Shown piece by piece: positions 43,947-59,372 of a stretch of 64,000 bases of DNA. The notes below the pieces were generated by a model. That model made no database searches. It was not told the origin of the DNA and worked only from the letters and a program-made list of their open reading frames with translations. Numbering within the stretch: the first letter of the stretch is position 1; the number at the start of each line of letters is the position of its first letter. Source of the stretch: Saccostrea cucullata (Eukaryota); assembly GCF_032062105.1 (NCBI RefSeq), contig NW_026940018.1, positions 124,001 through 188,000 of the forward strand, in the 5' to 3' direction. Made by a program: the position numbers and the translations under genes.

Positions 43947-45396
43947 TTAATATCGAGCTGAAAGAAAAAAAACGCTAATCATATTATACTGTATTATCAT
44001 ATTGTATCATATTTAATTACATTATATTACACTATACTATATCATTATGCATAGAAATAATCAATGACACTTACCTTTCATTCCAATGCCTGTAATAAGA
44101 ATATACACGAGGATTTAGAAATATTTAATTTTTATAATAATAAATAGCTACATGTATTTCCTTTTGAATAATTTTGTCTTCTACTTAAGTTGTATTTTTT
44201 CATCTTTAAACTATTACTAAGGCTGAAAGAAAATCAACTTGTAAAATGCTTTTTCCACATAAAATGGAAAATAGCCGCACATATTTACCAAAATCTACCT
44301 GTGTTGATTACTTACCTCCCATGCCACTCATAGATCCGATACCGCCCATGGATCTCATACCGCCAATAGAACCAATACCGCCCATAGATCCCAATCCTCC
44401 CATAGATCCAATGCCGCCCATGGATCCCAATCCTCCCATAGATCCAATGCCTCCCATCAATCCTTTGCCTCCCATAGATCCAATACTGCCCATGGATCCC
44501 ATGCTGCCCATGGATCCTATAGATCCAATACCACCCATAGATCCAATGCCGCCCATGGATCCCATGGATCCCATTGATCCAATGCCACCCATGGATCCGA
44601 TACCTCCCATAGATCCAATACTACCCATGGATCCTTTGCTTCTCATAGATCCAATACTGCCCATGGATCCCATGGATCCAATGCCGCCTATAGATCCCAT
44701 GCTGCCCATGGATCCCATAGATCCAATGCCACCCATGGATCCTATGCCTCTCATAGATCCAATACTTCCCATGGATCCCATACTGCCTATGGATCCCATA
44801 GATCCAATGCCACCCATTGATTTCATATTCATTCTTCCGCCCATAGATCCTATTCCGCCCATGCTTCCCATTGAACCAATGCCGCCCATGCTTCCCATTG
44901 AACCAATGCCGCCCATGCCTCCCATTGAACCAATGCCGCCCATGCCGCCCATGGATCCAATACCTCCAATGCTGCCCATTGATCCAATACCGCCCATGCT
45001 TCCCATCATTTTACTTAGGGGCATCATGCTCGTGCTCATAGATCCAATGCCACCCATACTACCGCCCATGGAACCTATACCGCCCATGGAACCTATGCCT
45101 CCCATTGACATCAATCCACCGCCTATTCCACCTGACATCATCCCGCCGCCCATTCCACCTAGAGATAAGCAGTTAGAAAAAAATGGCAATTCAAAAATTG
45201 ATATGAAGTGGGATTTTTTTGTTAAAAGGTTATCTTTAGTCATTTCCATTTAATATTTTCAAATCATTTTTATAGCAGACATTTAATTTAAAATTTATTA
45301 AACATTTCTTTAAAGATACAAACCTGGACCATAGCTTTTTGCAGTGACCATAGATACGGCCAGCACAGCGGAAACAGCGTATAGAAGAGATGCCAT
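43947..45396 (-). CDS. Gene E: secreted Gly/Met/Ser/Ile-rich abductin-like protein, coding exons 45396-45324, 45158-44316, 44089-44075 and 43957-43947, ~313 aa
   Basis: tttcag|ATG starts MASLLYAVSAVLAVSMVTA-KSYGP-G. An 843-nt phase 1-1 exon encodes GSMGGI/GSMGSI repeats, a 15-nt microexon adds GIGMK, and the terminal exon adds ARY*. All junctions are GT-AG and in frame. A 5' non-coding exon donor lies at ~45531 and tataaaa at ~45606-45612. Confidence 0.88.
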
Positions 45397-50959: not shown

Positions 50960-51781
50960 TTATCCATAATAGGCAGCTGTAACAAAATAAAAAGTAAAAT
51001 TACTTTTTATTAATGAAAATGCAACAATTCTTATGGCTGACACACTAGGTTTAGGAATACAGAAATCAAAACATTCTTCATTACAAAGAAAAAATAAAAT
51101 AATCATGGTTATCGTGAAGATTTAAGAACTTTCTTAGGAAAAAAATACTAAAACAACTCTTCTATGTAAATGTGATAATATTGTTATGGACAAAAACATA
51201 AGTGAACTTACATTTCATTCCGCCCATCATACCGCCCATGCCTCCGCCGCCCATCATACCGCTCATTCCTCCGCCGCCCATCATACCGCTCATTCCTCCG
51301 CCACCCATCATACCGCCCATCTTAACGGGCATCATCATACCCTTCATTCCTCCCATACTTCCTCCGCCCATACTTCCTCCCATTCCCATGGGCATCATCA
51401 TTCCGCCCATTCCTCCTCCCATGGAACCGGCCATCATTCCTCCGCCCATGCCACCGGCCATCATGCCTCCGCCCATTTTACCTCCTTTAAAGGTTAGCCA
51501 TTCATTATTAGCAAAAACATTTACATGTTCAAACAATAATTTGTTTCACGTATTTCATATTTTGAATGTAAGTGAATGTTGTATTTAGAGTATTCTATAG
51601 TTTTTTTCTTCTTTATTTAAAACATTTTTGTAAAAGGATTTGAAAAGTGAAAAAATGCAGCTGGAAAAAAAACCGAGTTAAATTTTATCCTTAATAATTT
51701 CATTTATTGATTACCTGGTCTGTAGTACGCTGCATTAGCGACAACAATCAGAGAAAGAACGGTCACAAAAGAGAAGGACAT
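50960..51781 (-). CDS. Gene F: secreted Gly/Met-rich abductin-like protein, coding exons 51781-51715, 51484-51212 and 50976-50960, ~118 aa
   Basis: tttcag|ATG starts MSFSFVTVLSLIVVANA-AYYRP-G. A 273-nt exon reads GKMGGGMMAGG...GGMK and the terminal exon gives SAYYG*. A 5' non-coding exon donor lies at 52263 and TATA at ~52350-52357. Confidence 0.9.
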
Positions 51782-52263
51782 CTGAAACACAAATCATTTG
51801 CGATATCTTCAAAATATACATTGCATAATTTAAGTATATTATTGTTTATCCTTTTTCACTCGCATTTAATATAATTTTAATATACTGATTTAATGATTGT
51901 GCATTTCTTGCATATTATTATATATATATATTTTTAAAAGTCATTATCTTTAAACTAGTTATGAAGTATATTGTACGACATTAATCAATGAAAAGGCAAA
52001 GATAACGAGGGCAATGATCAAACCCCACCTCCCATTAAAAAAACCTATAAACAATATAAATCTGTGAAAAGGCATGAACAAGGATTTCTGGAAATTCCAG
52101 AGGTGAGATCAGATGCCCAGGAGAAGCAAACATCCCCTGTTGATCTTCAATCTTCAACTTTATTCTGATTAATACCGAAGTAATACTAAATACAGATATT
52201 TTATATCTTAAAATGCATACGTCGGTATCTAAAACAAGAAGACCAATATGAAAATACACTTAC

Positions 52264-52540
52264 CTTGAGCAAAGGAATTAAAACGAGGACTGCGAAGGAA
52301 TTGAAGAATTGAGAGGCGGAGAACTGTCGGAACTTGAAACCAAGATGGGTTTATATAGTTAGGTATCTTGGTGTTTTTCCGGTAGGGAATTTGTCGGGTA
52401 ATCATTATGTTTGATGTATTACACGTCACACCTGACACCAAGTGTGTTAGACTTTGAAATATTATTTTTACGACATGTTACTCACCTGATTTCGTGTATG
52501 GATCATCGCACAACACACCTTAACATAATTTTATGATCAT
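52264..52540 (-). promoter_or_regulatory. Gene F non-coding exon 1 and promoter, homologous to that of gene G
   Basis: Blocks shared with 59103-59372 include tgagcaaagg, ttttccggt, cgggt.atcattatgtttg.tgtat and acacacctt.aca..attttatg. Confidence 0.7.
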
Positions 52541-56207: not shown

Positions 56208-57837
56208 GTTATCTATGAAATCCTTGTTAAGATGCAAGCATATGTAATGCATTTTATCGTCTCGTATCCTGTTTTCGACCGTATTGTATTTTCGACTTAT
56301 TTTTCCCAATCTGCTCCCCGTTCCGATTCCGCGCGGTAGAACATTATTTTCGGTTGCTACACTTGGAAAAAAACCTTTGAAGCACAACTGTAGTGAAAAT
56401 ACCCAAAATAATCAATTCAACGGATTTTCCCCGGTGGTTTTAGTCCCATGTCAGAAAGTCTAGTCTTTTTACTACTGCACATTTTATCTGTTAATTAATT
56501 AAAGCCGTAATCGGTTAATTACAAAGATTTTTTGATGAATTTTTTCTGAAAGAAAAATAAGATCACTGTCAAAGAGACGCATGAATATTAAAATGAATGG
56601 GTGGATCAAACAATTTTTTTTCTACCTTAAATATGAGCACTTTCTTACAGATTTTCACTGAAAAATGCAACGTAATTTCATTGATTTTTTTTTTTTTTGG
56701 AAATGCACAGCTACTGACAGATCAATTCAACCATCAAATAAATGTATCTGCAACCAAAATATGCAACCTGTTCAATGTTTTTTGAAGGACAGACAATCGT
56801 ATTTTTATTGTTTGGAATATCCAGTGGATATTTATAACCAATACTGCTTGGGCGTTGATACTATATTTAGGTCGAAAACACAAGACGCTAATATTTTTGT
56901 AAGGAAAACTGTACCTTCTCCATATTATTGCATATAAATAAAATAAACACAAAACTGCAATTTGGGTTATATCATTTTATTTATAGACACACATGCTAAC
57001 ATTTTAAGCCCATATTTTTTCAGGTTCTATAAAGTTTGTGATAAATTGATAAATAACATCGAAATAGGTCGAAAATACAATACGCCAGGATATTACACTG
57101 GAGGATTTACTTTAGATAAGGTAAGAGTTTTCAAGCGAAATTGCTTTTATGAAATACTAGTAGCTCAAAAGTCCATAAAACAATACAAAATAGGAGCAGA
57201 ACAAACCTGGACCTCTAAAACATTGATGATCAGAGGTGTTATCAAGTGTCATGGAGGAGTGAACATCCCATGCTGATCGGTAAACCCGTTTTGGCTCCTT
57301 GACATGATCGGGAAATAACGGAAAATCAATCGACAATTCAGTGTGAAAATAATGACCTAATAATTTAGTATGAAAAATCCCCAGACAGCATTAGATTCAA
57401 TGATAAATTCTATTTTCTTGCGTATCTAACCAACTGAGAGATGTAAACCCCGTATGCAGATGATACAGGTATACAGCTGTTAACGTAAAAGAACAGCATT
57501 ATAAACTATAATTTAACTGAAATAAGGTAGTCAAAAATATGAAAAATCGTAGACAAAATCATATCTGAGAGAAAATTTGTATTCTATGATTAAATTTAAT
57601 TTCCTTTCCCTATAAACTCTGCATTTAGGACGTCATGGAGGTTTAAATATTATGATAAATAGAAATTCAAAGCATTATATTTCCTTTAGAATTAGTCTTA
57701 TTCAATCAAATTAAAAGAATAGATTCATTGCATCACTAATTTATTTCTAGTTTTCACTAATAAAAAAAACATAGAGAATGTCAAACTCCTCGGGGTCTTT
57801 CGATGATGATGAATTATAAATACGGTGAGCGTCTTTA

Positions 57838-58660
57838 CTAATAGGCGGCTGAAATAGAAGGGAAAAAATAAAATTGGATTATATGTTCGCTGAATCATTT
57901 AAAACTATCATTCTTTCTATAAAATTTTAGGATTAGAGTTTGATCAACAAAATTGAGGAAATATGAAATGTATCCTATTTAAATAATAAAACAACAACAA
58001 AAAAGACTTACATTTCATGCTTCCCATGCCACCCATACTTCCCATGCCACCCATACTGCCCATGTTGCCTGGCATCATCATCATACTGTTCATTCCGCCC
58101 ATGTTTCCGCCCATTCCATTTTTCATCATATTCATCATTCCCATTGGCATCATCATCATGTTACCTTTGCCCATGCCGCCTCCCATTCCTCCATTCATCA
58201 TGCCACCCATAGATGGCATCATCATCATCATTTTGTTCATTCCTCCCATGCCTCCGTTCATCATGCCTCCTCCCATACCGCCGTTCATCATGCCTCCTCC
58301 CATGCCGCCGTTCATCATGCTTCCTCCCATGCCGCCGTTCATCATGCCTCCTCCCATGCCGCCATTCATCATGCCTCCTCCCATGCCGCCATTCATCATG
58401 CCTCCTCCCATGCCGCCGTTCATCATTCCCATACCACCTCCTTATGAAAAATGCATTGAAATAATTTACTGACTACTTTTAACACCTGAATCAATTAATT
58501 ATTTGATGATGGTCGTAGGATATGTTTGTCATTGTAATATTTACAAAAGAAGAATGGGATCAAAAATTAATACAAGTAATATATCTTCAGTACCTGGCCC
58601 ATAGCCTGCGGCGCTGGCGACGGCAATAAGGCAAGAAACGGCAACTAAAGAGAAAACCAT
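57838..58660 (-). CDS. Gene G: secreted Gly/Met/Asn-rich abductin-like protein, coding exons 58660-58594, 58440-58012 and 57848-57838, ~168 aa
   Basis: tttcag|ATG starts MVFSLVAVSCLIAVASA-AGYGP-G. A 429-nt exon carries ~7 copies of MMNGGMGGG and the terminal exon gives SAY*. A 5' non-coding exon donor lies at 59102 and tatttaaa at ~59186-59193. Confidence 0.9.
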
Positions 58661-59102: not shown

Positions 59103-59372
59103 CCTGAGCAAAGGTAATGAAGTGTCGGACAAAAACCCGGAGCAATGAGAGACGAAGCACTGATTAGATTCAGAACCGAAGGGGGTTTAAATAGTCAGAG
59201 TGTTTATCCTTTTTCCGGTGGCCAATTAGCCGGGTGATCATTATGTTTGTTGTATAACAAGTTTATCCTGACAAAATGTATGTTTTGACTTCGATGTTTT
59301 ATTTTGGGACAGTTCATTGTTTTGATGTACTGTATTTATCGTGTCTGACACACCTTGACACCATTTTATGGT
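59103..59372 (-). promoter_or_regulatory. Gene G non-coding exon 1 and promoter
   Basis: Collinear conserved blocks with the gene F upstream region. A TATA-like box lies ~85 nt upstream of the exon-1 donor. Confidence 0.7.

Follow-up and report, generated by a model that had tools for sequence, protein, structure and literature searches.

Does abductin, the hinge rubber of scallops, have relatives in true oysters? The question is raised by gene G of the true oyster Saccostrea cucullata, a small gene that a preliminary description, made from the sequence alone, read as an abductin homolog with a different repeat core. Positions below refer to the window, the 64-kb stretch of DNA that was analyzed (contig C22155:124001-188000 of the 1.17-Gb assembly), unless contig coordinates are stated.

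Structure and product of gene G

G is a minus-strand gene of four exons, in which both coding-region introns are GT-AG, in phase 1 and 153 and 163 nt long. The first exon is non-coding and has an approximate start (59103-59170); it was placed from the alignment with the paralogs F, H and I, which stops at a common donor (GT at 59102-59101), rather than from reads. Exon 2 (58594-58660; 67 nt) has its ATG directly after the acceptor and encodes a hydrophobic leader with Cys10 and Tyr20, ending in GYGP at a phase-1 donor. Exon 3 (58012-58440; 429 nt) encodes the Gly/Met/Asn core, and the coding part of exon 4 (57838-57848; 11 nt) supplies SAY and the stop codon, and with them the C-terminal Tyr. 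A TATA-like box (59186-59193) has the same position in F, H and I, while an AATAAA (57740-57745) is a candidate polyadenylation signal; all of these elements lie on the minus strand.

Splicing of G is seen in contigs from one public run (X1). These contigs cover exon 3, lack the 153-nt intron 2 and run from exon 3 straight into the SAY-stop last exon with the 3' UTR of G. The run is of guessed RNA kind ('RNA?') and is the only, weak, RNA-type holder of the gene. The cores in its contigs differ from that of G by indels and by an eight-codon block that is found in H and I and absent from G; these differences place the contigs in a genotype, or in a close species, other than that of the sequenced G. 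The protein-collection search returned MTFP1 from the same contig but not G, so G appears to be unannotated.

The precursor comprises 168 amino acids. Counted from residue 20 on, it is 40.9% Gly, 36.9% Met, 10.1% Asn and 2.7% Pro, with 4 Lys and no Phe, Asp or Glu; Tyr occurs at residues 20 and 168 only. The leader contains an 11-residue hydrophobic window (KD 2.9) followed by small residues at positions 15-19, and cleavage is predicted at about residues 18-20. Tandem Repeats Finder (TRF) reports a repeat at 58241-58426 with a period of 27, 6.9 copies and a 95% match, corresponding to a 9-residue unit of which six copies are exact. The N-terminus, Gly/Met core and KSAY C-terminus given in the preliminary description all read as stated in the spliced model. 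Its account of the core, as MMNGGMGGG repeats with no Phe, is right as to the repeat and the absence of Phe; the repeat is confined to the first half of the core, and the second half consists of Met runs and GSMGGM units.

The gene cluster and its setting in oysters

Ten Met-rich secreted-protein genes (A, B and D-K), apparently uncatalogued, form a 75-kb cluster at contig ~141-214 kb. F, G, H and I are close paralogs, with leader exons of 67 nt and Gly/Met cores. F (50960-52408, minus strand; coding exons 51781-51715, 51484-51212 and 50976-50960) encodes 118 amino acids (Gly 46%, Met 32%) with a doubled Tyr at both ends and the C-terminus KSAYYG. H has a leader identical in protein sequence to that of G, its closest paralog; its terminal exon (contig 190442-190452; L009:2442-2452) reads SAS instead of SAY, so that the C-terminal Tyr retained in G has been lost. 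Cys10 is the sole leader Cys in G, H and I, and the leaders of E and F have none.

In E and J, as in G, Tyr-Gly follows the leader and a very small last exon carries a Tyr. E, a more distant relative (43947-45396, minus strand; exons 45396-45324, 45158-44316, 44089-44075 and 43957-43947), encodes 313 amino acids with a leader ending in SYGP and the C-terminus KARY. J (contig 206445-209706; L010:8445 to L011:1706, plus strand) encodes a multi-block Gly/Met/Pro protein of 677 amino acids; its leader, which contains Tyr4 and Cys7, is followed by YG, the gene includes a micro-exon of 15 nt, and the protein closes with KYW.

The remaining genes, A, B, D and K, have unrelated leaders and Met/Ser/Pro cores. 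A (17123-18052, plus strand) encodes a secreted Met/Ser/Thr-rich protein, B (28018-29018, plus strand) a secreted Met/Ser/Pro-rich protein ending in YY, and D (35858-36821, minus strand) a small secreted Met/Pro/Asn-rich protein. Tyr is among the last three residues in eight of the ten cluster genes, the exceptions being H, which ends in KSAS, and D, which has none there. A search of the oyster's own genome with a leader profile added no further family member, and weak core matches elsewhere in the genome proved to be tandem repeats.

The promoters of F, G, H and I are 73-90% identical to one another in DNA sequence and share a block located, in G, at 59212-59244 (minus strand), ~20 nt above the TATA box. 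It combines the words TAATGAT and CCGGAAA, which we take to be homeobox-like and ETS-like, respectively, at a fixed spacing. The pattern has four exact matches in the 1.17 Gb, one each at F, G, H and I (window 52376-52408, in F, and 59212-59244; contig 191463-191495 and 201700-201732), and is absent from E and J; the reversed pattern, used as a control, has none genome-wide. The block is a candidate tissue-specific control element.

Substitutions in the leader exon point the same way in all six pairs among F, G, H and I, with pN below pS. G and H differ by four synonymous and zero replacement changes (pN 0, pS 0.22), and G and I show pN 0.14 against pS 0.37. These ratios indicate that the leader exon is under purifying selection. 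They bear on whether G might be a silent copy or a gene-like repeat, as could be suggested by its absence from the protein collection of an annotated genome and by a core unlike its own in the one weak RNA-type holder. The intact frame, the canonical splice sites, the spliced contigs with a G-type 3' end, the excess of pS over pN and the conserved promoter have already largely refuted that explanation, which we consider very improbable. G is a real spliced gene of S. cucullata, as the preliminary description had observed.

The cluster can be anchored by MTFP1, which lies outside the family and 47 kb from G; its last exon (10669-10995, plus strand; Pfam MTP18) is 100% identical to an S. cucullata NCBI protein. 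In Magallana gigas and Crassostrea virginica the order is RPA1, stathmin, MTFP1 and then counterparts of the first cluster genes. A has positional counterparts in M. gigas and Saccostrea echinata, and B has orthologs in M. gigas and C. virginica. The MTFP1 locus of S. echinata carries A and C, and that of Ostrea edulis carries C. No cluster counterparts were found near MTFP1 in Pinctada, Mytilus or Tegillarca, and the position of the cluster looks oyster-specific.

C is a small gene (13706-14095, minus strand) that sits between MTFP1 and A and is not Met-repetitive. It is conserved, at 44-78% identity, in M. gigas, C. virginica, O. edulis and S. echinata; in M. gigas its product carries a hydrophobic leader and has no recorded Pfam match. 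A and B retain short non-repetitive blocks across oyster genera. In A these are an N-terminal block rich in Lys, Tyr and Trp and a terminal SSYF, and in B a basic, Tyr-rich end; they are possible cross-link tags.

Mobile elements also occur in this region. Upstream of MTFP1, a 470-aa ORF (1686-3098, minus strand) with reverse transcriptase and GIY-YIG domains represents a Penelope-like retroelement, near which there is a run of N (1282-1411). Two broken reverse-transcriptase-like retroelement copies lie within the cluster, one between A and B (22927-23890, minus strand) and the other between H and I (L010:357-1124, minus strand). Directly past the cluster is a gene with an nSTAND3 NTPase domain (contig 222555-226402; L012:4555-8402, plus strand).

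Comparison with abductin

Abductin is the hinge rubber, and a major protein of the inner ligament, of Argopecten irradians (Cao, Wang and Bayley 1997, as summarised in PMC9999432 and PMC13052691). It is described as the sole natural rubber that works in compression, with a sequence known from scallop and cross-links that are unproven (PMC9999432). It has a 19-residue signal with Tyr4, Cys6 and Cys10, Tyr20, a C-terminal Tyr and a GGFGGMGGGX core; the mature chain of 116 residues is 58% Gly and ~1% Pro, with 14 Met (~12%) and 3 Lys (PMC13052691, PMC9999432).

G resembles abductin in being a small secreted Gly/Met protein with an Ala-rich leader of ~19 aa, Tyr at both ends, few Lys and low Pro, and its Cys10 and Tyr20 stand in identical register when counted from Met. 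Several features differ. G lacks Cys6 and Tyr4 (the latter within the cleaved leader), as well as Phe and the GGFGGMGGGX motif, and contains 10% Asn; Gly amounts to 41% against 58% and Met to 37% against about 12%, a threefold difference, and the mature chain has about 149 rather than 116 residues. No GGF motif occurs in any of the genes E-J. The looser unit GG-hydrophobic-G-G/S-M is found 3 times in G and 20 times in the core of E (44316-45158), mostly with Ile, so that the core nearest to the GGFGGM unit of abductin belongs to E and not to G.

The match on which the proposed homology turns lies around the cleavage site. The abductin string in this alignment is the one given in the preliminary description and not a deposited sequence; it gains some support from the agreement of its Cys and Tyr positions with the reviews. 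Residues 10-21 of G match the string at 10 of 12 positions, with one adjacent swap, giving a BLOSUM62 score of 52 (worked out by hand by taking the two swapped positions off the self-score of 60). Agreement over the first nine residues is poor. Against the same string the paralog F scores 52, E 30, and J and the unrelated leaders 18-21. Shuffled G leaders reach 52 with P = 2.8e-5 when shuffled in full, and with P = 3.9e-3 when the hydrophobic (h) and cleavage (c) regions are shuffled apart. Since the score window was picked post hoc and about six candidate genes were available, a conservative P is a few percent. The match had been called more than shared composition; it does beat shuffled and unrelated leaders, but with this conservative P and a string not taken from a deposited record it is suggestive of homology and not proof.

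A phase-1 intron follows the leader in all ten cluster genes, including the four with unrelated leaders, and is thus a poor discriminator of kinship with abductin. The microsynteny with scallops envisaged in the preliminary description was not found: viewed from the MTFP1 side, the sequence up to 10 kb from MTFP1 contains neither a Gly/Met-rich ORF nor a leader match in A. irradians, Pecten maximus and Mizuhopecten yessoensis, two of which have a TPR gene next to MTFP1. In S. cucullata 47 kb separate G from the anchor, and a 10-kb view allows for translocation, so this result is compatible with homology.

Database searches, run with single exons rather than the joined spliced protein, returned no abductin among the protein, profile, Pfam and ESM Atlas matches of the family exons. 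The core exon of G had no match at E 0.001 among 5.8 billion proteins; this core does not bring even the true paralogs F and I above the threshold, which is why such searches come up empty. At E 10 the core of H matched two metagenome ORFs, which are unrelated and similar in composition only, indicating that Gly/Met repeats arise independently. Both matches of the leader-exon profile among 1.84 billion representatives were repeat artefacts, Pfam gave no domain hit for the family, and the one bacterial cluster from the ESM Atlas (0.78-0.79) was below lead level.

The resemblance might be explained by convergence, with G a ligament protein of independent origin whose leader match reflects an Ala/Leu/Ser-rich signal and a selected Tyr-Gly. 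The structure-aware null (0.4% per comparison before correction), the different core motif, the lack of a database homolog outside the oyster's own genome, and a cluster position that oysters retain and for which scallops, Pinctada, Mytilus and Tegillarca showed no equivalent near MTFP1 are all in keeping with this. The identical register of Cys10 and Tyr20 from Met, and a match to the abductin string equal in score to that of a proven paralog (F), are harder to reconcile with it, and the gene order leaves room for translocation. We consider convergence unlikely and lean slightly toward common ancestry of G and abductin. What holds of the proposal that an abductin-type family extends beyond scallops is an oyster multigene Gly/Met family with the layout of abductin; the core motif and the second Cys are absent, and for this reason G is not assigned to the abductin family. 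By design, G probably works like abductin.

Ligament proteins of pearl oysters and the proposed role of G

The literature searched, which takes in a minority of the subscription journals, contained no true-oyster ligament protein sequence, and the nearest comparisons are with the pearl oyster Pinctada fucata. Its ligament methionine-rich protein, LMP (PMC7591529 Fig. S3A; PMC13080008), is a ligament framework protein from another pteriomorph bivalve. Compared by eye, it has YGP right after the leader, as do E, G, H and I, very high Met and a Tyr near the C-terminus. Its core differs, being a long, charged, nearly Gly-free Met/Lys/Pro/Asp repeat of the MMMKPD type, for which a spiral shape and the alignment of aragonite fibres have been described (PMC7591529; PMC13080008), whereas G has no Asp and 4 Lys. 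Another ligament protein of P. fucata, pfu_aug1.0_1662.1_66071.t1 (PMC7591529 Fig. S3B), has a Met/Asn/Gly C-terminal region whose NKMM and GKGS-x-MMM stretches resemble those of G and H (by eye, in low-complexity sequence), and like G it ends in Tyr; it differs in its length of ~475 aa and its long Asn/Gly/Trp repeat region, and the published model is without a leader. Acidic regions such as nacre and prism proteins have are noted to be missing from ligament proteins of P. fucata (PMC7591529), and G is likewise without acidic residues. The likenesses to the two pearl-oyster proteins, drawn by eye and in short or low-complexity sequence, favour a role in the ligament and suggest the idea of a single ancient family whose cores were swapped.

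Judged by analogy, a role of G in the oyster hinge ligament is probable. The fuller proposal, in which G is at once a ligament elastomer and a distant relative of abductin with a replaced repeat core, seems to us evenly balanced between true and false. Under it, cleavage of the leader near residues 18-20 would make Tyr the first residue of the mature chain or a residue adjoining it. The uncharged Gly/Met chain would stay a random coil, with Met driving self-association, and Tyr-Tyr links at the ends, possibly with Met-Lys sulfilimine links, would join the chains into a network, as has been proposed, unproven, for abductin. Such a cross-linked entropic network could store compressive energy in the hinge, and the products of F, G, H and I would be co-expressed and blended in the ligament.

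G might instead be a scaffold or glue of another material, such as an insoluble Met-rich shell scaffold, the periostracum, the cement of valves or larvae, or an egg coat. P. fucata has Met-rich insoluble proteins in nacre and prisms besides the ligament, the cluster includes the Met/Ser/Pro-rich genes A, B, D and K, which are unlike abductin, and tandem clusters of shell-matrix genes are common in bivalves. Among the latter, the shematrins are Gly/Tyr-rich rather than Met-rich. They resemble the oyster family in that tandem paralogs encode repetitive, Gly-rich secreted proteins, and are reported absent from C. gigas (PMC4759782). Use in another material is made less attractive by the lack in G of an acidic stretch, which sets it apart from several nacre and prism proteins. 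A weaker indication is that G is rare in RNA runs and absent from the protein collection, which fits a small, seldom-sampled tissue better than the general mantle. We regard use in another material as rather doubtful.

A wider reading of the ligament proposal would derive abductin, LMP and the oyster family from one ancestral pteriomorph ligament gene. The tag of leader and YG and the terminal Tyr would have persisted, and each lineage would have remodelled the central exon, tuning hinge mechanics: into a Gly/Phe rubber in the swimming scallops, a Met/Lys/Pro/Asp core in pearl oysters and a Gly/Met/Asn core in oysters. We offer this common origin tentatively, as a possibility that is more likely to prove wrong than right.

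The genes described here provide named candidates for the oyster ligament, and the promoter shared by F, G, H and I could explain tissue specificity. The family also includes natural variants with which terminal Tyr links could be tested against Met-Lys links, as H lacks the end Tyr and F has it doubled, and E is a natural variant with an Ile version of the abductin hexamer. Gly/Met-rich ligament material beyond scallops was already known by composition from older amino-acid analyses, and reviews speak of 'scallops and clams'; what is new is the genes themselves and the ancestry that they may share with abductin.
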